Virus record (IMG/VR): IMGVR_UViG_3300030102_006934
Span: 310,001-374,000 of that record
Direction: 5' to 3' (one strand)
DNA: 64,000 nt
The position numbers were made by a program, and so were the translations under genes. The first letter of the stretch is position 1. Every line of letters starts with the position of its first letter. This document shows, in pieces, positions 448-41,024 of this stretch. Under the pieces are notes generated by a model. The model saw nothing but the letters and a program-made list of their open reading frames with translations, was not told the DNA's origin and ran no database searches.

Positions 448-1230
448 ATGAAATATTTTTTCGACATAAAAGAGATAGATAAAAATTTAGCAATAGATTT
501 TATACAAGAAAGACACTACTCTAAAGTACTACCTAGATTGACTAAACACTGGTTGGGTTGTTTTTACGATGGTGAACTAGTGGGTGTTTTAACTTTAGGT
601 TGGGGTACACAGCCTTTACAGACAATAAAAAAATTATTCCCTAAGTTGGTATCACAAGATTATTATGAAATCGGTAAAATGTGTATGGATGATAAAATGC
701 CTAGGAACTCAGAGTCTCAAATGATATCTTCAGTTGTCAGATGGATTAAAATTAATCTACCAGAAAAAAAATTTTTATACACATGGGCTGATGGTATTGT
801 AGGTAAAGTGGGTTACGTTTATCAAGCTTCAAATTTCATATATGGTGGTTTTATATGGACAGATATCTATATATCTCCGAAAGGTGAAAAAATACACCCT
901 AGAAGTTCTAAGTCACTACTAAAAGAAAATGCTGATTTTTTGGGTAAAGATAAGTTATTTTGGATGACCCCAGATTTTATGAAAACAAAGGGTATTAGAA
1001 GGATAAGGGGTAAACAATTTAGGTATATTATACCCCTAAGTAAAAGTTCTAAAAAAATATTAAAAAATGGGTCCACTGTCACTTGGGGTATAGAATACCC
1101 TAAAGCTAAAGATCTATTATGGAAAGAACAAGTTGCTAAAGGTAAATATGATACACTAAAAGAGATACCACAAATGAATTTAAGTGTTGTAGAGATTAAT
1201 GAAAAAAATGTGAACGCACATAAGAATTAA
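448..1230 (+). CDS. Mom-family (GNAT-fold) DNA adenine modification protein
   Basis: FIQERHYS, LVGVLTLG, EIGKMC, PRNSESQMIS, TWADG, GYVYQASNFIYGG motifs typical of Mu Mom homologues. Confidence 0.8.
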   Translation: MKYFFDIKEIDKNLAIDFIQERHYSKVLPRLTKHWLGCFYDGELVGVLTLGWGTQPLQTIKKLFPKLVSQDYYEIGKMCMDDKMPRNSESQMISSVVRWIKINLPEKKFLYTWADGIVGKVGYVYQASNFIYGGFIWTDIYISPKGEKIHPRSSKSLLKENADFLGKDKLFWMTPDFMKTKGIRRIRGKQFRYIIPLSKSSKKILKNGSTVTWGIEYPKAKDLLWKEQVAKGKYDTLKEIPQMNLSVVEINEKNVNAHKN

Positions 1231-1470: not shown

Positions 1471-1478
1471 TATATTTG
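1471..1478 (+). promoter_or_regulatory. Bacteroidota-type -7 promoter element TAnnTTTG
   Basis: TATATTTG upstream of ATG 1505; same element near 5968, 6698, 9469, 17912 and on the - strand near 15080, 26238, 27468, 48170. Confidence 0.65.
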
Positions 1479-1504
1479 TGTTATTAAATGTAAAACACAA
1501 AAAA

Positions 1505-2266
1505 ATGAAATACGATTTAATACAAAAATTTATCAACAGAGAGGTCAAAGCTAAAAGTATTTTTACCATCAAAAAGATAAATAAGAGTGAAGCTTATGAC
1601 TTTATTAAAAAGTATCATTATTTAGGTGACGCAAAATTTTTCTCTAAATTTGCGTATGGTTTATTTAGTAGAGAGGATGATGGTCTTATTGGGGTCACCA
1701 CTTTTTCTAACCCACAAGGAGCCACAACTATGAAAGGTTGGTTTAACCTAACTAACCAAGATCAATCTGTTTTGGAACTAAGTAGATTGTGTGTTATACC
1801 AGAACTAAATGGGACTAACGCCACATCTTTCTTATTGGGTAATAGTATTAAGATGTTGAAGAAAGAAGGTATAAGATCAGTAATAACTTTAGCTGATAAT
1901 TCTAGACATAGTGGCAGTATCTACCAAGTTTGTAACTTCACTTATTTTGGTTTATCTAATAAAAAGAGTGATTTTTTCTTATACAAAGGTGATGGTACCT
2001 TTAAGAAAAATTTTAGAGGTAAAACAAATGATGCACAAGGTGTTTGGTTACCAAGAACCCAAAAACACAGATACGCCTATATTTTAGATAAGACACTACT
2101 ATGTAATTATGAACCTAAACCTTACCCAAAGAAAGAAGACTTTGGTGTGAAAGAATGTACTTGTGATAATAACGTTATCCTTGACAAAAGGTTTAACGTT
2201 AAGTATACTTGTCCCAACTGTACCAATGAGTTGAAATTGGTAGAAGAGGAGAAAGAGTGGTTTTAA
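1505..2266 (+). CDS. Second Mom-family DNA modification protein with C-terminal Cys cluster
   Basis: FIKKYHYL, LIGVTTF, LELSRLC, NATSFLL, TLAD, HSGSIYQVCNFTYFG; C-terminal CxC...CxxC; ATG 1505 preferred over GTG 1478. Confidence 0.8.
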   Translation: MKYDLIQKFINREVKAKSIFTIKKINKSEAYDFIKKYHYLGDAKFFSKFAYGLFSREDDGLIGVTTFSNPQGATTMKGWFNLTNQDQSVLELSRLCVIPELNGTNATSFLLGNSIKMLKKEGIRSVITLADNSRHSGSIYQVCNFTYFGLSNKKSDFFLYKGDGTFKKNFRGKTNDAQGVWLPRTQKHRYAYILDKTLLCNYEPKPYPKKEDFGVKECTCDNNVILDKRFNVKYTCPNCTNELKLVEEEKEWF

Positions 2267-2282
2267 TACCGCATTTATTTTT

Positions 2283-3191
2283 ATGAAGGAAAAAATTAGA
2301 CAAATACTTAGAGAAAGACAACTAGAGTTAGACCTACAAGCAAAGTCTAACGATATTGATGAAACCAAATATGATAGGTGCTCACGTTACGAATACAACA
2401 GTAAGCATAAAAATCTATGTTTAGATTTGGCAAGTATGGGTAGTTTTTTACATAAAGATTTAGGTCTTAAAGATATAATAAACTCTAAAATATTACTAAT
2501 GGGGGAGGTCAAAGATCTAAACCACCAATACCAAGAACCCTTAAGTATTTTATATAATAAACCAAACTTTGAAGAAATCAAAAAGGTATCTGATGGTTAT
2601 TATGTTGAACATCTAAACAATAAAGTGGTATTATTTGATGAGTCTGGTCAATGGCACCATGTAAACAAATTGAATACTAATTATTCAGATTTGGCAGAAC
2701 TTTTAACAGAACTTTTTATTAGGAGTGGGGATATTAAAAACATAGTCAATAAAAATAGTTTAGGTTTAAAAAAATACTTATTATCACAAAAAGAAAATTT
2801 AAGATCTTTAATGGATAAACATTTTCAGTTAGAAGAGTATAAAGAATTTGTTAGAAACACAAAGACACTTTCAGAAAGAGGTGAAAGAGCTGAAAACGAA
2901 GTCAAGTCAATATTAGAAAAAGTAGGATTCAAAACACTATACCAAGGAGGGCATGGTGACTTTATTGATATGATATTTGGTATTGATTTAATTATGAATT
3001 ATAATGATGAGGTAGTTACAATACAAGTGAAAAATTCGGAAAGCCAAGCTTTAAAGGCTTCAGAACAATTCACCTATAGAAGGGTTGATTATTTTGCTTC
3101 ACCCACCAATTTAGGCATGGTCATTAAAAACAGAAAGGGTGAAATAACAGAACTAGATAGAGATGGTAGGATAACTAATGAAACCGAATAA
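2283..3191 (+). CDS. Protein with N-terminal KIRQILRE signal and C-terminal PD-(D/E)xK-like nuclease domain
   Basis: GERAENEV...GIDLIM...TIQVK. Confidence 0.55.
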   Translation: MKEKIRQILRERQLELDLQAKSNDIDETKYDRCSRYEYNSKHKNLCLDLASMGSFLHKDLGLKDIINSKILLMGEVKDLNHQYQEPLSILYNKPNFEEIKKVSDGYYVEHLNNKVVLFDESGQWHHVNKLNTNYSDLAELLTELFIRSGDIKNIVNKNSLGLKKYLLSQKENLRSLMDKHFQLEEYKEFVRNTKTLSERGERAENEVKSILEKVGFKTLYQGGHGDFIDMIFGIDLIMNYNDEVVTIQVKNSESQALKASEQFTYRRVDYFASPTNLGMVIKNRKGEITELDRDGRITNETE

Positions 3192-7353: not shown

Positions 7354-7889
7354 TGAAAAAAGATAGGTTTTTATCGGTTAAAAAATTAGCAACAAAACTA
7401 CATGGAGAACAAAAAAGAAAATACTCTGGTGAACCATATGTTACACACACTATTAGGGTTGCTAAAATTGTTGAGGACCATGGTGGTGATGATAATATGA
7501 TCTATGCTGCATTACTCCATGATGTTCTAGAGGATACAGAAACCACTGAATTGGAATTGTTCTCTATGTTGTCTACTATTATAGGTAATACTGACTCTAT
7601 AGATACTCTTCGTTTAGTTAAGGAACTAACAGATGTTTTTACAACAGAAGAATACCCCAAAATAAATAGAAGTGGAAGAAAAGAAATGGAATCTTTTAGA
7701 CTGGGTAAGGTTTCACCTAGGTCACAAACAATTAAATACGCGGACCTATTAGACAATAGTGCTGATATTTTAAGAAATGATCCTAAGTTCGCTAAATTAT
7801 ACCTAAAAGAAAAAGAGATGATTTTAAATCAAATGGACCAAGGTAACCAAACACTTTATAAAAAATGTTTAAATGTCTTGAACCTTTGA
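7353..7889 (+). CDS. HD-domain RelA/SpoT-type small alarmone hydrolase (Mesh1-like)
   Basis: HGEQKRKYSGEPYVTH, AALLHDVLEDT, IKYADLLDN. Confidence 0.85.
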   Translation: MKKDRFLSVKKLATKLHGEQKRKYSGEPYVTHTIRVAKIVEDHGGDDNMIYAALLHDVLEDTETTELELFSMLSTIIGNTDSIDTLRLVKELTDVFTTEEYPKINRSGRKEMESFRLGKVSPRSQTIKYADLLDNSADILRNDPKFAKLYLKEKEMILNQMDQGNQTLYKKCLNVLNL

Positions 7890-7984
7890 TTTATTAATAC
7901 TATATTTAAATAAAGATAAGGGGTTACACAATAACGTTTGGAACTCTGTAACCTTAAAAAAGAACCTTATCTTTTTTTTATTTT

Positions 7985-8056
7985 GGCCCCTTCGTCTAGT
8001 GGTTAGGACGCTAGGTTTTCATCCTAGAAACAGGAGTTCGATTCTCCTAGGGGCTA
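7985..8056 (+). tRNA. tRNA-Glu(TTC)
   Basis: Cloverleaf; anticodon arm CTAGG-TT-TTC-AT-CCTAG; GTTCGATTC. Confidence 0.95.
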
Positions 8057-8147
8057 CTGAGTAGGTTTTCGGTGTAAAACTCTTCGGAGTACCTAATCAA
8101 AATCCAGCCATTGTTCAGAATGGGAGATTATGAATAAAAACCGAAAC

Positions 8148-8221
8148 GGTCTGGTAGTTCAGTTGGTTAGAATACCTGCCTGTCACGCAGGGGGTCGCGA
8201 GTTCGAGTCTCGTCCAGACCG
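8148..8221 (+). tRNA. tRNA-Asp(GTC)
   Basis: GGTCTGG/CCAGACC acceptor; CCTGC-CT-GTC-AC-GCAGG. Confidence 0.95.
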
Positions 8222-8231
8222 CAAATATTTA

Positions 8232-8316
8232 GGAAGATTGGCAGAGTGGTCGAATGCACTGGTCTTGAAAACCAGCATACCGAGAGGTATCGAAGGTTCG
8301 AATCCTTCATCTTCCG
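8232..8316 (+). tRNA. tRNA-Ser(TGA)
   Basis: GGAAGAT/ATCTTCC; CTGGT-CT-TGA-AA-ACCAG; long variable arm; G73. Confidence 0.95.
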
Positions 8317-8322
8317 CAAAAT

Positions 8323-8349
8323 AAACCCAAATACTCTTTGGGTTTTTTT
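8323..8349 (+). terminator. Rho-independent terminator
   Basis: AAACCCAAA-tactc-TTTGGGTTT plus T-run. Confidence 0.8.
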
Positions 8350-8373
8350 GTTAACCCAAACTATTTATTGTTG

Positions 8374-9132
8374 ATGAAACTTTTTGAAGTGTACGAAGAT
8401 ATAGTTATTGAAAACTCTTGGGGTAAACTAGAGGAAATACTACAATCAGGTTTATTTCAAGAAGAAGGTGACTCTAAATTAAATGAATTACTAGAGAAGT
8501 CACAATTGTTAATTTTTAAAGCCTTTGACATAAACCCCAAAGAGGGTGGTAAATATTTTGTTTCTGGTTCCGCTAGACTATTTAAAAATCCTAGATTATT
8601 GAATGTGTTAAACAAACACGATAAATCTTTTGAGTTAGTATTAGGTGATTTAGATGTGGTAATACCTAATCAAGAAAACTGGGAAACATTATACAAAAAC
8701 TATACAAATACAAATTCTGAATTTATAAAAGAGTTGTCACAAAAAATAAGTAAATCACCAGAAGATATTAAAAATAAGTTTTTAGAACAAAAGGGTAATT
8801 TTACAAAAGGTATTTATAGACCTGGTGTTGGCGGTATGGAACTTGTTGATGACGATATGGAAGCTTTTAAAGTTTGGGACCCTAGTAAAGCTAAAGACGC
8901 AAAAGACATGTCTGTTAGGAGCCAAAGTGACATTCTAAAAGACAGTGTTAATATAGGTGGTTATTTTTTTATGAATATAAAAGATGTATTTGATTATAAA
9001 TCAAAATTGAGTAGGGAAAAAGAAAAAAACATTGTGGCTTTCTTAAAAGATTATTTAACAGGAGAAGAGTCCCCACAAAGAGCCGAAGAACTTTTCAATA
9101 AAATAGGTGAAGAACTTGGAAAGGATAAATAA
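8374..9132 (+). CDS. Putative nucleotidyltransferase-fold protein
   Basis: FVSGSARL...GDLDVVI (GS...DxD); TATTTATT just upstream of ATG 8374. Confidence 0.55.
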   Translation: MKLFEVYEDIVIENSWGKLEEILQSGLFQEEGDSKLNELLEKSQLLIFKAFDINPKEGGKYFVSGSARLFKNPRLLNVLNKHDKSFELVLGDLDVVIPNQENWETLYKNYTNTNSEFIKELSQKISKSPEDIKNKFLEQKGNFTKGIYRPGVGGMELVDDDMEAFKVWDPSKAKDAKDMSVRSQSDILKDSVNIGGYFFMNIKDVFDYKSKLSREKEKNIVAFLKDYLTGEESPQRAEELFNKIGEELGKDK

Positions 9133-9150
9133 TTTAACTATCTTTACACA

Positions 9151-9438
9151 ATGAAAGGTAAAGAATACTTTAATAGGTTCACGGAAGATGAAAAAGTGGT
9201 TTGGTTAAAAAATTTCCACAAGTTTGGTTTTAATGATTTTAAGTCTTCAGAACAAGTAATGAAAACTGAATTTAAAAACTACTTTCAGTTTTTTTTCGGT
9301 ATATTCCCAATAGAAAAAACTGAAGAAGGTTATAGTTATTGGTCAAACCTTTTCCACAAATATAGAGAATACGATAAGTTAACTATTAAAATTGGTCATA
9401 ATTTTAAGAGTTATGTAACTGAACCAAAAATTTTTTAG
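9151..9438 (+). CDS. Hypothetical protein
   Basis: ORF track. Confidence 0.7.
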   Translation: MKGKEYFNRFTEDEKVVWLKNFHKFGFNDFKSSEQVMKTEFKNYFQFFFGIFPIEKTEEGYSYWSNLFHKYREYDKLTIKIGHNFKSYVTEPKIF

Positions 9439-9468
9439 AAATAGGTTGTTATATTAAAAAGTTTTATT

Positions 9469-9496
9469 TATATTTGTATCAGTTCTTTGAAAATAT
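9469..9496 (+). promoter_or_regulatory. TAnnTTTG promoter plus boxA-like leader of the tRNA operon
   Basis: TATATTTG-tatc-AGTTCTTTGAAAATAT directly before the RNA; near-identical TATATTTG-tgtt-AGTTATTTGAAATAT precedes tmRNA. Confidence 0.55.
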
Positions 9497-9752
9497 GACC
9501 GTGTGGCGGAATTGGTAGACGCTTACAAGAAAAACTAAAACTATGGTAAAACTTGGTTTATATGTTTCCCTCTCACCCTTGTGTTGGTGAAAAAACATAT
9601 AAGTATAATATAATATAATAATAACAACTAAAAGATTACTAACGCGTTAGTTGAAACAAATTATAATATGATAAATAATAAAGAAAAATCCAGTTGTTTT
9701 AGTTTGATTGTATGAACGAAAGTTCGTGAAGGTTCGAATCCTTCCATGGTCA
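9497..9752 (+). ncRNA. tRNA-Leu-like RNA with a ~180-nt insert replacing the anticodon loop
   Basis: Acceptor GACCGTG/CATGGTC+A73, D arm GCGGAATTGGTAGACGC, anticodon stem TACAA/TTGTA, variable arm GAAC-GAAA-GTTC, T arm GAAGG-TTCGAAT-CCTTC. Confidence 0.8.
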
Positions 9753-9850
9753 CAATAGGGTGGTAGATAAAATAGTAAAAAATCAATAATGCACCGAAAG
9801 GGGGAAATTCAATTTAGCATAAAAATCAATTACAACCACCCACAGTTTTA

Positions 9851-9924
9851 GGACTTTTAGCTCAGTTGGTTAGAGCACTTGACTCATAATCAAGGGGTCG
9901 TAGGTTCGAGCCCTACATGGTCCA
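9851..9924 (+). tRNA. tRNA(CAT), probably Ile2 (lysidine type)
   Basis: CTTGA-CT-CAT-AA-TCAAG; C4-G69 and A73; D arm resembles Ile2; elongator Met not excluded. Confidence 0.85.
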
Positions 9925-9933
9925 CGTTAATTA

Positions 9934-10017
9934 GCTCGGGTGGCGGAATAGGTAGACGCGTCAGACTTAAAATCTGATTCCCAGTTGGGAGTGAGGGTTC
10001 GATTCCCTCTCCGAGTA
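9934..10017 (+). tRNA. tRNA-Leu(TAA)
   Basis: TCAGA-CT-TAA-AA-TCTGA, long variable arm. Confidence 0.95.
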
Positions 10018-10020
10018 CTA

Positions 10021-10231
10021 GAGAGAGTGATGGGTACTCTCGGTGTTAGTAGAGGTCACGAAACTCTACCCCAAAAGCCTACGCGCGGGAAGAGCGAGGT
10101 ATGTGGATACACGGATGGGTCATCCCCCTACCCCCACATCAAGGATTGACTTTTTTATGTGGTAAGACACTAATGAGTATTTTGAATAGGAAAAGAACGT
10201 TAAAATCTAGTACACTAAACCCTAGTGTACG
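10021..10231 (+). ncRNA. Candidate structured ncRNA in tRNA spacer
   Basis: GC-rich; stems GAGAGT/ACTCTC, GTAGAG/CTCTAC, ATGTGG/CCACAT, GGATG/CATCC, GTACACTA/TAGTGTAC. Confidence 0.5.
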
Positions 10232-10236
10232 CATTT

Positions 10237-10310
10237 GGATGGGTAGCTCAGCTGGATAGAGCATCTGCCTTCTAAGCAGACGGTCGCAGGTTCGAATCCT
10301 GCCCCGTTCA
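10237..10310 (+). tRNA. tRNA-Arg(TCT)
   Basis: TCTGC-CT-TCT-AA-GCAGA; GTTCGAATC. Confidence 0.95.
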
Positions 10311-10315
10311 CTATT

Positions 10316-10342
10316 AAAACCTCGACATTAGTTGGGGTTTTT
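10316..10342 (+). terminator. Rho-independent terminator
   Basis: AAAACCTCGAC-atta-GTTGGGGTTTT plus T-run. Confidence 0.75.
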
Positions 10343-10391
10343 TATTGCCAATTAAAATAGGTTACCTACCTTTGTTCTAAACAAATAAGTT

Positions 10392-11132
10392 ATGTTAAAT
10401 ATATTTGAGGTTGGTGGATGTGTTAGAGATGAAATTCTAGGTGTAAGTACCAACGACATCGATTTTACTTTTGTTATAGAAGATACCAACCAAACAGTGG
10501 ATGAGGGTTGGGATCAAATGTTATCTCACCTAAAAGAGGCTGGGTTTAAAATATTTTTAGAAACAAAAGAATGTTTTACTGTTAGAGCTAAATTCCCCAA
10601 AAACCATATTAATGAAGGATTAGTGGCTGACTTTGTTATGGCTAGGAAAGAAGTTGGTTACATTGATGGTACTAGGAAACCTATTTTAGAACTAGGTACA
10701 CTGTTAGATGACTTAGTTAGAAGAGATTTTACAATCAATGCTTTAGCAAAAGATATGGACGGTAATATTATAGACCCCTTCGGTGGTGTAAAACATCTTA
10801 AAGAAGGTATCCTAATAACACCTCTAGATTCAAGAAAAACCATGATGGACGACCCACTTAGAATATTAAGAGCTTTAAGATTTTCTATCACAAAAGGTTT
10901 TGAGGTATCTGAAGACATTATGGAAGCTATGAAGCAACCAAACATTTTAGAGAAATTAAAAACAACAGTTAGCCAAGAAAGAATTAGAGAAGAGTTGACT
11001 AAGATGATGAAATTCGATACAATTAAAACAATGAAACTACTAGTTAATATTGATAACGAGTTTATTCATGGGTTTTTAAATATCATTTTTGAAAAAGACA
11101 TGTGGTTAAACCCAACTACCAAAAACAAGTAA
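10392..11132 (+). CDS. cca: tRNA nucleotidyltransferase (CCA-adding / poly(A) polymerase family)
   Basis: VGGCVRD, DIDF, DLVRRDFTINALA, DPLRILRALRF, VSQERIREE; adjacent tRNAs lack encoded CCA. Confidence 0.9.
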   Translation: MLNIFEVGGCVRDEILGVSTNDIDFTFVIEDTNQTVDEGWDQMLSHLKEAGFKIFLETKECFTVRAKFPKNHINEGLVADFVMARKEVGYIDGTRKPILELGTLLDDLVRRDFTINALAKDMDGNIIDPFGGVKHLKEGILITPLDSRKTMMDDPLRILRALRFSITKGFEVSEDIMEAMKQPNILEKLKTTVSQERIREELTKMMKFDTIKTMKLLVNIDNEFIHGFLNIIFEKDMWLNPTTKNK

Positions 11133-11149
11133 ATTAAAAAACAAAAAAA

Positions 11150-11404
11150 ATGAATTTATTAAATAATATCGTAGATTATTACGAAGAAGAGGAAATATTA
11201 AAGGCAGATGGTTTCGATGAGGCGGTTATTGGTATAGAAGAAGGTACCATGAGATTGATTTATTCAGTTACTAAGTGTATTGAAATACTAATGACTGAAG
11301 ATGATATGTCTATGGAAGATGCTATGGAACATTTTAGATATAATGTTAGTGGTGCTTATGTTGGTAAAAAAACACCTATATGGTCAGAGGATATGTTTTA
11401 TTAA
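11150..11404 (+). CDS. Conserved phage hypothetical protein
   Basis: ADGFDEAVIG...YNVSGAYVGKKTP. Confidence 0.75.
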   Translation: MNLLNNIVDYYEEEEILKADGFDEAVIGIEEGTMRLIYSVTKCIEILMTEDDMSMEDAMEHFRYNVSGAYVGKKTPIWSEDMFY

Positions 11405-11541
11405 CATATTTATATAGTAGTAAAATAACTTTTACATAATTTGTTTTTTTATATAGAAATAATGTACAATATTTTTGAACCAGAGAACATTCATGACGAG
11501 GATGACGAGTTAGATATTTTCTAGTATATTTATTAGAAAAT

Positions 11542-11615
11542 GGGGGATTAGCTCAGCTGGCTAGAGCACCTGCCTTGCACGCAGGGGGTCATCGGTTCGA
11601 CTCCGATATCCTCCA
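11542..11615 (+). tRNA. tRNA-Ala(TGC)
   Basis: G3-U70; CCTGC-CT-TGC-AC-GCAGG. Confidence 0.95.
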
Positions 11616-11678
11616 CAATAAAATTGTTTTTACTCACCACTATCACTTATTAACTATCTTACTATATTTATATTCGAT

Positions 11679-17938: not shown

Positions 17939-18335
17939 GGGGGTATTCTGGATTTGACTTGCAGTAATCAAGATTGGTGTAAGCATGTCGTGAAATGATA
18001 CTATCACGTAAATCTGTGTATTACAACTCTTAAATGGCAACATTTTAGAAAACGCAACAGTAGGTCATTTTGTGGCTGAAGATGCAGCTGTAGTAGCCTA
18101 ATTAGATTAGGACTAACTACCCATCACAACTAAGACTCCGATATTAGAGTATGTGATGTCAACGAATCGGAAACAGACTTAGTATGGTATAGTAGCCAAG
18201 TCGAACTACTATCAATGTTGTTGAACACTGTAAAAAAATCAACTATTTTGGTAAGTTAGAAAACTTAATCCTAAACATGTAGAAGACCGTTAAGATGCGG
18301 TAAGGACATGGGTTCGACTCCCATTACCTCCACCA
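17939..18335 (+). ncRNA. ssrA: tmRNA
   Basis: 5' GGGGGTATTCTGGATTTGAC, 3' GGTTCGACTCCCATTACCTCCACCA, G3-U; tag frame 18036-18101 GNILENATVGHFVAEDAAVVA*. Confidence 0.95.
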
Positions 18336-40657: not shown

Positions 40658-40842
40658 TCACAAAACCTGTTGACCATTTAAAATAAGTTTAGTAGTATTG
40701 TATTGTATTTAAACAGAGAAGTCTGAGAAAAAGAAAGAAGAGAAATTTTTTAAACTTGGTTATCGTGTTAAGTTAAAAAGTTGTAAACTTAATTATTGAA
40801 AAGAGACTTAATGTTTAAGGGGGTATAAAATCCCCCATATAA

Positions 40843-40914
40843 GCGGGTGTAGTTTAAAAGTAAAACATTTAACATCCAGTTAGAAGTTGGCGGTGCGAAT
40901 CCGACCTACCCGCT
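40843..40914 (+). tRNA. Non-canonical tRNA-Gly(TCC), copy 1
   Basis: GCGGGTG/TACCCGC+T73; loop CATCCAG (A33); T arm GGCGG-TGCGAAT-CCG(A)CC; D loop lacks GG. Confidence 0.8.
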
Positions 40915-40952
40915 CTAAAATTAAGAAAGACAGTTATACTGTCAAAATATAA

Positions 40953-41024
40953 GCGGATGTAGTTTAATGGTAAAACGTTTAACATCCAGTTAGAAGTTAG
41001 GAGTTCGATTCTCACTCATCCGCT
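40953..41024 (+). tRNA. Non-canonical tRNA-Gly(TCC), copy 2
   Basis: GCGGATG/CATCCGC+T73; loop CATCCAG (A33); T arm AGGAG-TTCGATT-CTC(A)CT. Confidence 0.85.

Follow-up and report, generated by a model that had tools for sequence, protein, structure and literature searches.

Deviant phage tRNA-Gly genes as putative glycine carriers for Mom DNA modification

Introduction

Glycyl-tRNA is used outside translation in at least two settings that are relevant to the present study. In Staphylococcus, the non-proteogenic tRNA-Gly isoacceptors (NP1-3) are glycine donors for FmhB, FemA and FemB in peptidoglycan bridge synthesis. They are extra tRNA-Gly(UCC) species that keep glycine identity and supply a GNAT-fold aminoacyl-transferase outside the ribosome, but they carry UGC/UGU instead of TΨC in the T loop, lack the D-loop GG, have a sixth anticodon-stem pair with a five-base loop and bind EF-Tu weakly (PMC7826273). 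In phage Mu, the GNAT enzyme Mom was shown in 2026 to transfer glycine from Gly-tRNA-Gly onto adenine N6 of DNA (PMC13219725; bioRxiv 10.1101/2023.03.24.534169). Mu Mom accepts all three Escherichia coli tRNA-Gly isoacceptors, which the authors read as scavenging of host tRNA. Phage-encoded tRNAs, by contrast, have been explained by codon supplementation or nuclease evasion, for example in the T5 and mycobacteriophage cluster C1 models (PMC10264068).

Our study examined a pair of deviant tRNA-Gly genes in a 64 000-nucleotide stretch (the window; positions 310,001 to 374,000 of IMG/VR record IMGVR_UViG_3300030102_006934) of a 380 kb jumbo phage genome. An earlier note, made from the sequence alone, had inferred that these RNAs are selected to be glycylated but kept off the ribosome, and are thus candidate dedicated glycyl donors rather than decaying pseudogenes. 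We tested this by comparative sequence analysis, covariation and searches for a partner enzyme.

Results

Two deviant tRNA-Gly(UCC)-like genes

Every sequence statement of the earlier note was confirmed. Both copies have G1-C72, C2-G71, G3-C70, U73, C35 and C36, and they share an identical anticodon arm (TTTAA-CATCCAG-TTAGA) with a pairable C32/G38. Pairs 49-65, 51-63, 52-62 and 5-68 differ compensatorily between the copies, and copy 1 has GTGC in place of GTTC. Copy 1 lacks the D-loop GG but keeps G19, so that it is A18-G19. The coordinates and properties of the features discussed here are given in Table 1.

Table 1. Features of the window relevant to the tRNA-Gly-like pair and the proposed partner enzymes. 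R1 is the family model, which included both window copies
Feature	Coordinates	Strand	Description	Supporting data
Deviant tRNA-Gly(UCC)-like gene, copy 1	40843..40914	+	Ends at discriminator U73; A33, C32-G38 pair, bulged A (40904) between 63 and 64, T loop TGCGAAT (G55), D loop AAAAGTA (A18); no CCA encoded	Missed by ARAGORN; Rfam 28.5 bits, just under the 29-bit gathering score; R1 97.2 bits (sequence was in the model); minimum-free-energy fold gives the acceptor stem, a 6-bp anticodon stem with a 5-nt loop and a bulged T arm
Deviant tRNA-Gly(UCC)-like gene, copy 2	40953..41024	+	Same anticodon arm with A33 and C32-G38, bulged A (41014), normal TTCGATT T loop, G18G19; no CCA encoded	ARAGORN tRNA-Gly(tcc); Rfam 47.1 bits; R1 95 bits (sequence was in the model)
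Hairpin directly 5' of copy 1	40819..40842	+	GGGGG-TATAAAAT-CCCCC followed by ATATAA; probably part of a precursor leader or processing context	Same arrangement in locus L005 with a changed stem; lies inside the metatranscriptome contigs
Hairpin directly 5' of copy 2	40929..40952	+	GACAG-TTATA-CTGTC followed by AAAATATAA	In L005 the stem is GACAAC...GTTGTC, a compensatory change
Stretch recovered in metatranscriptomes	40727..40913	+	Leader of about 100 nt plus copy 1, ending at the 3' end of the tRNA	Short contigs (155-174 nt) in three metatranscriptomes; no coverage of the adjacent coding sequence
Mom paralog A	448..1230	+	GNAT-type glycyl-tRNA-dependent adenine-N6 DNA modification enzyme; proposed user of the RNAs	PF25680 at 181.9 bits (cut-off 27.1 bits); matches Mu Mom structure 8bv8 at E 7.5e-17; Mu residues H58, Y59, S124, D149 and Y159 kept, position 111 is K
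Mom paralog B	1478..2266	+	ORF starts at GTG 1478, alignment made from 1508; type also found in the clade of records L007 and L008	PF25680 at 105.7 bits; no direct PDB hit; H58, Y59, R111, S124, D149 and Y159 kept
Match to the core domain of a CCA-adding enzyme	10407..10814	+	Inside the main tRNA cluster; could complete the two RNAs (functional connection inferred)	PF01743 at 67.9 bits within a 247-aa open frame

The seven other tRNAs of the phage are canonical, at 59-70 bits, and lie 30 kb from the pair. Of 29 distinct control phage tRNA-Gly(UCC) sequences, 25 have an unpaired 32/38, mostly C32/A38, and the extra A is absent from the control tRNA-Gly sequences with a standard T arm and present only in L058 and L068. 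The metatranscriptome contigs provide weak evidence for expression of copy 1, as depth is low and DNA carry-over is not excluded.

A conserved and structured RNA family

The deviant features are conserved with strong compensatory change in dozens of marine phage contigs and are absent from about 186 000 prokaryote species genomes, in which the A33 pattern gave 0 hits. Two exact-pattern hits (L004 and L006) were chance matches inside coding sequence. Alignment of 23 distinct relatives of the window pair gave 99 % paired cells on the cloverleaf, compared to about 50 % or less in the slid controls, with 13 of 22 pairs changed on both sides and 0 of 500 shuffles scoring as high. The bulged A was invariant in 23 of 23, and the 32-38 pair was always Watson-Crick (CG 20, AU 2, UA 1). 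The search pattern that collected most of these relatives fixed A33, T34, C35, C36, A37 and the D arm, and conservation of those positions in this set is therefore by construction, whereas positions 32/38, the stems, the T arm and the bulge were left free. The independent set of mom-adjacent RNAs described below gave 98.6 % paired cells, compared to about 40 % in the slid controls, and 306 doubly changed cells against 72 in shuffles.

Genetic linkage to mom

The genome was screened for enzymes that use aminoacyl-tRNA. FemAB (PF02388) and Acetyltransf_6 (PF13480) gave no match in the 380 kb genome at E up to 1, and the class II synthetase core was also absent. The immediate neighbours of the pair are a NUDIX hydrolase, an isochorismatase-type hydrolase, an RmlC-like epimerase and several unknowns; none is a tRNA-using enzyme, and the synteny reflects clade relatedness only. 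The genome does, however, encode two Mom paralogs, and only two RNAs of this family.

All 8 viral records with the bulged tRNA encode Mom, compared to 0 of 38 records with a canonical tRNA-Gly(UCC) sharing the same D arm, 9 of which are at least 90 % complete. Counting 6 independent lineages against 27 distinct canonical sequences, we calculated an exact-test value of about 1e-6. In the reverse test, 79 of 80 viral loci found with a Mom profile carry one family RNA abutting or overlapping the mom 3' end, of which 68 are on the same strand and 11 are convergent, and most overlap the mom frame. This figure applies to one Mom subfamily, as the query was built from Moms already known to be tRNA-linked, and four of the 79 hits were in the training set of the model. 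In 47 of the 68 same-strand modules the mom frame has no stop before the RNA, and in 20 more the stop lies 8-18 nt inside it. Phages with distant Moms (Mu, PAN70, pAEv1818 and SerPounce) gave no hit to the RNA, which fits the published use of host tRNA by Mu.

The linkage is not uniform. In the window the RNAs lie 40 kb downstream of the mom genes, and in the L007 and L008 records they are 117-125 kb away; linkage there is by co-occurrence only. A conserved element 3' of the tRNA in L007/L008 folds as hairpins plus an intrinsic terminator and matches no Rfam family. At Mom-B-type loci no RNA lies within 3 kb, and records carrying only the Mom-B type are inconsistent: four (G046, G047, G049 and G050; 29-70 % complete) show only a canonical tRNA-Gly, and one (G056; 94 % complete) shows none. 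Copy numbers of Mom and RNA match in G000 and G003 (2:2) and in six other records (1:1), but not in G048, with 2 Moms and 1 RNA, or in the cultured Psychrobacter phage vB_PmaS_Y8A, with 1 Mom and 2 RNAs.

Constraint on the mom-adjacent RNAs

Among 54 distinct mom-adjacent RNAs, G1-C72, C2-G71 and U73 are invariant (G1C2G3 in 54/54, C70G71C72 in 53/54), G3-C70 holds in 53 of 54, and C35/C36 are kept in all but one. These include the published bacterial GlyRS identity set of U73, G1-C72, C2-G71, C35 and C36 (PMC9976931). The bulged A is present in 54/54 and 32-38 is paired in 51/54. In contrast, N33 is T, A, G or C and the wobble base N34 is T, A or C (loops GACCA 14, TTCCA 10, ATTCCA 8, ATCCA 4, GTCCA 4 and others), while the D-arm region is cut to 12 nt in 19 of 54. 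CCA is often encoded. G55-type T loops occur in about 35 of the 54, which are Mom-A-adjacent, and 9 have TTC; a pairing of Mom-A with G55-type and Mom-B with TTC-type RNAs is suggestive only.

Discussion

Our data indicate that the two genes belong to a widespread family of phage RNAs that is conserved in structure and genetically linked to mom. We found no published report of this link, in a search that did not extend to the supplementary files of the Mom paper. The inference of the earlier note that the genes are not pseudogenes is demonstrated by the covariation, and its inference of selection for charging, but not decoding, is supported at the level of the family. The earlier note could not name an acceptor, and Mom is now proposed as one from its genetic linkage to the RNA.

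We consider it probable that the two genes encode dedicated glycyl-carrier tRNAs for the Mom enzymes of the phage. Under this hypothesis, the RNAs are transcribed, processed and completed by CCA addition, possibly by the phage's own CCA enzyme, and are charged by the host glycyl-tRNA synthetase because they keep its identity elements. The paired 32-38 positions, the five-base loop with A33 and the bulged A on the T-stem strand would keep them out of the EF-Tu and ribosome pathway, or mark them for Mom, or both. Mom would then transfer the glycyl group to adenine N6 in phage double-stranded DNA, where it rearranges to N6-carbamoylmethyl-adenine, which protects the DNA from host nucleases. A private donor pool would let the phage modify a 380 kb genome without competing with translation. 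Use of Gly-tRNA-Gly as the donor has been shown for Mu Mom only, and charging of the RNAs described here, their exclusion from EF-Tu and the ribosome, and their preferential use by the cognate Mom are inferred without biochemical evidence. Furthermore, a private tRNA is not chemically required, given the range of isoacceptors accepted by Mu Mom (PMC13219725). R111K is strongly impaired in Mu, yet Mom-A of the window has K at this position, and R151, which is essential in Mu, is not conserved in either paralog or in the other tRNA-linked Moms.

A more far-reaching reading, which we regard as about as likely as not, is that these RNAs define a class of virus-encoded, non-decoding aminoacyl-carrier RNAs that co-evolve with a DNA-modifying GNAT enzyme, with the bulged A as the handle that both excludes EF-Tu and recruits Mom. 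In most small phages the carrier is fused to a mom reading frame that has no stop codon before the RNA, and release of the RNA by RNase P would then truncate the mom message and couple enzyme dose to carrier supply.

Of the alternatives, the least unlikely is that these are ordinary translational tRNA-Gly genes that supplement the host pool, with the odd features as tolerated drift or clade quirks. The window copies keep a complete cloverleaf and a UCC anticodon, like the U34 tRNAs the phage carries for other four-codon boxes (Ala UGC, Ser UGA), and copy 2 passes the Rfam threshold. Substitutions of U33 probably reduce rather than abolish decoding, and the combination of C32 and U34 might read all four GGN codons; position 32 is noted as governing four-way reading by an unmodified UCC anticodon (PMC7826273). 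A decoding role for the window copies, alone or in addition, is therefore not excluded. However, the deviations are conserved rather than drifting, the wider family loses U33, a fixed wobble base and often the D arm while keeping the GlyRS identity elements, and Mom is present in all 8 bulged-tRNA records but in none of the 38 canonical ones. The pair also lies apart from the canonical tRNA cluster, and GGT makes up 67 % of Gly codons, with GGA/GGG only 28 %. Stop-codon recoding was rejected, as standard-code ORFs cover 88 % of the genome. A frameshift-suppressor role (sufS/glyT) was set aside, as wobble-base variation in the family argues against any decoding role.

It is also unlikely that the RNA is mainly a cis-acting tRNA-like element in which RNase P cleavage at its 5' end truncates the mom message and limits a toxic enzyme, with aminoacylation incidental. 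The frequent absence of a stop before the RNA favours this view, and Mu mom is known to be tightly regulated, with late expression suggested to mitigate adverse effects (PMC13219725). Yet a pure processing signal would not need the conserved GlyRS identity elements, including C35, C36, U73 and often an encoded CCA. In the jumbo phages the RNA is 40-125 kb from mom and must act in trans, and the 11 convergent modules are not on the mom transcript. This role could coexist with the donor role.

Still less likely is that these are decoding tRNAs whose anticodon loop (A33, paired 32-38) has changed to resist a host or phage anticodon nuclease, as proposed for mycobacteriophage tRNAs with anticodon-loop substitutions (PMC10264068). 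Although the most striking change here is in the anticodon loop, this would not explain the invariant T-stem bulge, G55 with A18, the D-arm loss in relatives, the free variation of the wobble base or the tight physical coupling to mom. A tRNA-Gly-specific anticodon nuclease does not appear to have been described, and the host is unidentified. Decay of duplicated tRNA genes, despite the low Rfam score of copy 1 and its omission by ARAGORN, is refuted by the compensatory changes that maintain every helix and by conservation of the deviant positions themselves.

If these RNAs are the private donors of Mom, a large group of phages (at least 471 viral contigs for one Mom subtype) would encode both the enzyme and the carrier RNA of a DNA-hypermodification system, and this would be the first tRNA dedicated to modifying DNA and the first viral counterpart of the staphylococcal non-proteogenic tRNA-Gly. 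It would also explain some orphan or deviant phage tRNA genes that codon-usage models cannot. Standard annotation misses about 88 % of these RNAs, and phage tRNA censuses therefore undercount them; a covariance model of the family could serve as a marker for adenine-hypermodified phage genomes. The invariant bulged A and the minimal D-arm-less versions offer a simple natural system for asking how an aminoacyl-tRNA is kept from EF-Tu and handed to another enzyme.

Compared to the staphylococcal isoacceptors, copy 1 of the window shares the T-loop change, the missing D-loop GG and the sixth anticodon-stem pair, and copy 2 shares the paired 32-38. The analogy made in the earlier note is apt for G55, the missing G18 and the paired 32-38, but it remains an analogy, as the genome has no Fem transferase. 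The present family is encoded by a virus rather than a cell, and its partner is a DNA-modifying enzyme. Its hallmark is the bulged A between 63 and 64, whereas, according to the earlier note, T-stem pairs tune EF-Tu binding and the staphylococcal tRNAs, which escape EF-Tu, show GUGC/no-GG changes. Position 33 is not U in most members, many members lack a D arm and the gene is often fused to the reading frame of the enzyme. Common descent is neither shown nor likely. Compared to phage Mu, the enzyme family (PF25680) is the same, as is the inferred chemistry of glycyl transfer from charged tRNA-Gly to adenine N6 in double-stranded DNA, but Mu has no tRNA gene of its own, whereas the relatives of its enzyme described here carry their own specialized RNA. 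Phage tRNAs of the codon-supplementation and nuclease-evasion models are likewise carried by large lytic phages, and the nuclease-evasion model also involves anticodon-loop deviations from the host type. Those tRNAs, however, remain decoders with a standard architecture, whereas our evidence supports a family constrained for charging but not decoding and tied to one enzyme gene.

Two deviant tRNA-Gly-like genes and their conservation

The 380,343-bp IMG/VR phage record, of which bases 310001-374000 form the window, has a GC content of about 31 %. Inspection of the sequence confirmed two tRNA-Gly-like genes, exactly as described in the earlier note, with G1-C72, C2-G71, G3-C70, U73, C35 and C36 present in both copies. 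Both share an identical anticodon arm with the loop CATCCAG (A33 and a pairable C32/G38), and both have one extra A between T-stem positions 63 and 64, with the pairs on either side differing compensatorily between the copies. Copy 1 additionally has G55 (GTGC) and A18 in place of G18. ARAGORN and Rfam call copy 2 a tRNA-Gly(tcc), at 47.1 bits, whereas copy 1 is missed by ARAGORN and scores 28.5 bits, just under the 29-bit Rfam threshold. The other seven tRNAs of this phage lie 30 kb away, score 59-70 bits and are canonical, and the oddities are therefore specific to this pair. Each copy is immediately preceded by a short hairpin followed by (A)ATATAA, the stems of which differ compensatorily in locus L005, and this may indicate a processing signal or a phage-specific promoter element. 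The coordinates of these and other features are collected in the table below.

Features in the window and in related loci
Location	Feature	Details
window 448-1230	Mom-A	Mom paralog
window 1478-2266	Mom-B	Mom paralog
window 2283-3191	ORF of 302 aa	directly follows Mom-B; no Pfam match
window 7985-11616	main tRNA cluster	seven canonical tRNA genes
window 10407-10814	CCA-adding enzyme domain	PF01743, 67.9 bits; inside the main tRNA cluster
window 17939-18335	tmRNA	Rfam RF00023, 106.7 bits, full length
window 38023-40657	genes just upstream of the RNA pair	NUDIX hydrolase; isochorismatase-type hydrolase (possibly for NAD or nicotinamide salvage); conserved unknown 207-aa protein found in 26 loci; RmlC-like dTDP-sugar epimerase
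window 40727-40913	stretch covered by metatranscriptome contigs	leader of about 100 nt plus copy 1
window 40819-40842	hairpin	immediately precedes copy 1
window 40843-40914	tRNA-Gly-like gene, copy 1
window 40929-40952	hairpin	immediately precedes copy 2
window 40953-41024	tRNA-Gly-like gene, copy 2
L105:4348-5109	mom reading frame	no stop codon before the adjacent RNA
L220:2162-2301	two tandem family RNAs	Psychrobacter phage vB_PmaS_Y8A, OQ059336.1, about 7786-7925
L024:2712-2830	odd tRNA	inside a tRNA cluster
L007:11108-11290	elements downstream of the single tRNA	hairpins plus an intrinsic terminator; extra insert of about 130 nt between the tRNA and these elements
L008:205-292	elements downstream of the single tRNA	hairpins plus an intrinsic terminator, shared with L007
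L018:6963-8285	secreted proteins (cluster c30, with related loci)	SprB-repeat and T9SS-associated domains, next to the RNA

The closest tRNA-Gly genes in cultured phages (Streptomyces and Bacillus phages, about 80 % identical) have U33 and no bulge. Pattern scans found the deviant form in three other viral contigs and in 45 metagenome contigs, mostly marine, but in none of the genomes representing about 186,000 prokaryote species, one from each. The search pattern fixed the D arm and A33-T34-C35-C36-A37, and these positions therefore carry no information in this set, although everything else was left free. Positions 32/38 were C/G in 24 of 26 distinct sequences and T/A in one, and the bulged A was invariant. 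Across 23 distinct sequences the cloverleaf with a 32-38 pair was 99 % paired (about 50 % or less in the slid controls), with 13 of 22 pairs changed on both sides and 0 of 500 shuffles as high. These genes are under purifying selection for exactly the features that look aberrant. Downstream of the single tRNA, the contigs L007 and L008 share hairpins and an intrinsic terminator, neither of which matches an Rfam family. The secreted proteins encoded next to the RNA in relatives of this phage, at L018 and related loci, hint at a Bacteroidota host.

As a control, the same pattern with T33 gave 42 viral loci and 29 distinct sequences, most of which are canonical, with a 21-nt variable loop plus T arm and C32/A38. 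However, two distinct sequences, present in four loci (L058/L088 and L068/L083), combine T33 with an A32-U38 pair, the bulged A, a G55 T loop and the AAAAGTA D loop of copy 1. The bulge and the paired 32-38, and not A33, are therefore the hallmarks of the family. An odd tRNA at locus L024 has an A33-TCC anticodon loop (C32/A38), a bulged-A T arm and about 35 extra nucleotides in the variable region, but its acceptor stem is GCATATG with discriminator A and so it does not have bacterial glycine identity.

Association with the DNA modification enzyme Mom

Clustering of neighbouring genes revealed three different genomic contexts for the RNA, and in loci L015, L052, L058 and L068 the adjacent gene encodes a Mom-family protein (PF25680, E 4e-48). 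Mom of phage Mu makes N6-carbamoylmethyl-adenine, and a 2023 preprint and a 2026 paper show that it does so by transferring glycine from Gly-tRNA-Gly to adenine N6 in double-stranded DNA, after which the adduct rearranges on the base (bioRxiv 10.1101/2023.03.24.534169; PMC13219725). All three Escherichia coli isoacceptors worked, which the authors read as scavenging of host resources. The genome studied here encodes two Mom paralogs, of which Mom-A matches the Mu Mom crystal structure 8bv8 at E 7.5e-17. Both paralogs keep Mu residues H58, Y59, S124, D149 and Y159, R111 is R in Mom-B and K in Mom-A, and R151 is not conserved in any tRNA-linked Mom examined. A survey of jumbo phages reports Mom domains commonly fused to restriction-endonuclease-fold domains (PMC7824862), which draws attention to the ORF that follows Mom-B.

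The association was tested in both directions. All 8 viral records holding a bulged tRNA-Gly (G000-G005, G044 and G045, which represent four lineages) encode Mom, and L015 and L052 add two more lineages. In contrast, none of 38 records holding a canonical tRNA-Gly(UCC) with the same D arm does, and nine of those are at least 90 % complete. In the reverse direction, a profile of three tRNA-linked Moms retrieved at least 471 relatives in viral contigs, and the best 80 loci were fetched. A covariance model of the RNA (R1) hit 79 of the 80, once per locus and always at the mom 3' end, although four of the 79 hits are sequences that were in the model, the rest being independent; the one exception, L163, truly lacks the RNA. 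The phages Mu, PAN70, pAEv1818 and SerPounce, which carry distant Moms, have no such RNA, and this fits the documented use of host tRNA by Mu.

In the jumbo-phage clades the RNA is not next to mom, as it lies 40 kb away in records G000 and G003 and 117-125 kb away in records G001 and G002. The window's genome holds only two family RNAs. The match of two Moms to two RNAs in G000 and G003, and of one to one in six other records, is suggestive but not a rule, as record G048 has two Moms and one RNA and Psychrobacter phage vB_PmaS_Y8A has one Mom and two RNAs. Furthermore, the records found through the Mom-B paralog are mixed. Five carry a family RNA (the copy in G048 has T33), four, at 29-70 % complete, show only a canonical tRNA-Gly(UCC), one 94 %-complete record shows none, and the remaining seven, mostly small fragments, gave no hit or only a canonical tRNA.

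Sequence constraint in the mom-adjacent RNAs

Among 54 distinct mom-adjacent sequences, G1C2G3 is present in 54, C70G71C72 in 53, U73 in 54 and the bulged A in 54. C35C36 is present in all but one, A37 in most, and positions 32-38 are Watson-Crick in 51. Position 33, however, is G, T, A or C and position 34 is A, T or C, the commonest loops being GACCA (14), TTCCA (10), ATTCCA (8), ATCCA (4) and GTCCA (4). The T loop has G55 in about 35, CCA is encoded in 34 and the D-arm region is cut to 12 nt in 19, giving total lengths of 64-72 nt up to the discriminator. The helices covary strongly, with 98.6 % paired cells against about 40 % when slid and 306 doubly changed cells against 72 in shuffles; acceptor pairs 1-3 are frozen, whereas pairs 4-7 change freely. 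The frozen positions include the published bacterial GlyRS identity set of U73, G1-C72, C2-G71, C35 and C36 (PMC9976931), while the freely varying positions, U33 and the wobble base, and the dispensable D arm are what decoding needs. This is the signature of an RNA selected to be charged with glycine but not to read codons. It is also why ARAGORN finds only 7 of 59 of these RNAs and why the Rfam tRNA model misses both RNAs in the cultured phage vB_PmaS_Y8A. This phage carries ParB, Mom, two unannotated family RNAs and TerS in that order, the RNAs being tandem D-arm-less members with TTCCC loops, a bulged A and an encoded CCA, which sit in a gap between mom and terS that GenBank annotates as empty.

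Gene geometry and expression

Of the 79 modules, 68 are on the mom strand and 11 are convergent. In 47 of the 68 the mom frame has no stop codon before the RNA and reads through it, overlapping by 74-118 nt, and in 20 more the stop lies 8-18 nt inside the RNA, for example at tRNA positions 8-10 (TAG) in L068 and L058. Manual inspection of L105, one of the 47 loci without a stop codon before the RNA, showed that the conserved Mom C-terminus ...GMYKGQ ends where the RNA begins and that the frame then runs 47 nt past the RNA. Excision of the RNA would therefore truncate the mom message, and processing by RNase P would leave a truncated or stop-less mom mRNA. The tmRNA encoded by the phage studied here could matter if release of the carrier RNA from fused mom transcripts creates stop-less messages, although in this genome mom and the RNAs are not fused.

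Three metatranscriptomes from two studies contain short contigs (155-174 nt) that cover only the leader and copy 1, and one of these (X16) ends at the 3' end of the tRNA. No contig covers the flanking genes. This is consistent with a precursor transcript, but it is weak evidence, as depth is low and DNA carry-over cannot be ruled out. The phage encodes a match to the core domain of a CCA-adding enzyme, which fits RNAs that do not encode CCA, and it has no class II synthetase core.

Discussion

Our analysis confirms the observation made in the earlier note and supports its interpretation of the two RNAs as being under selection to be glycylated but kept off the ribosome. It also makes that interpretation concrete, as the acceptor pathway is very probably Mom-type adenine hypermodification of phage DNA, a conclusion that we hold with good, although not complete, confidence, the charging of these RNAs, their exclusion from EF-Tu and the ribosome and their preferential use by the cognate Mom being inferred. 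One alternative is a decoding or dual role for the full-length copies in this genome. These retain a full cloverleaf and a UCC anticodon, and it cannot be excluded that they also decode. GGA plus GGG make up only 28 % of the glycine codons of the phage and GGT makes up 67 %, and the genetic code is standard. A mainly cis-regulatory role for the fused versions is a further possibility, as truncation of the mom message by excision of the RNA may be a regulatory coupling. This is a partial alternative to the donor role and may equally form part of a broader interpretation of these RNAs.

The nearest functional analogue is the staphylococcal non-proteogenic tRNA-Gly that feeds the Fem transferases, which shares UGC in the T loop and the loss of the D-loop GG with copy 1 and a paired 32-38 with both copies, and which binds EF-Tu weakly (PMC7826273). 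The phage family differs in being viral, in having a partner that modifies DNA and in having a bulged A as its hallmark; it often lacks U33 and the D arm, and it is frequently fused to the enzyme gene. As no Fem-type transferase is present in the phage genome, the family would work like the staphylococcal system without belonging to it. The Mom literature that could be read, which excluded the supplements of the 2026 paper and subscription-only journals, does not mention any mom-linked tRNA gene. We therefore regard these RNAs as probably being a dedicated non-proteogenic tRNA-Gly, a kind already known from staphylococci, but with a new partner, a new architecture and a viral origin.
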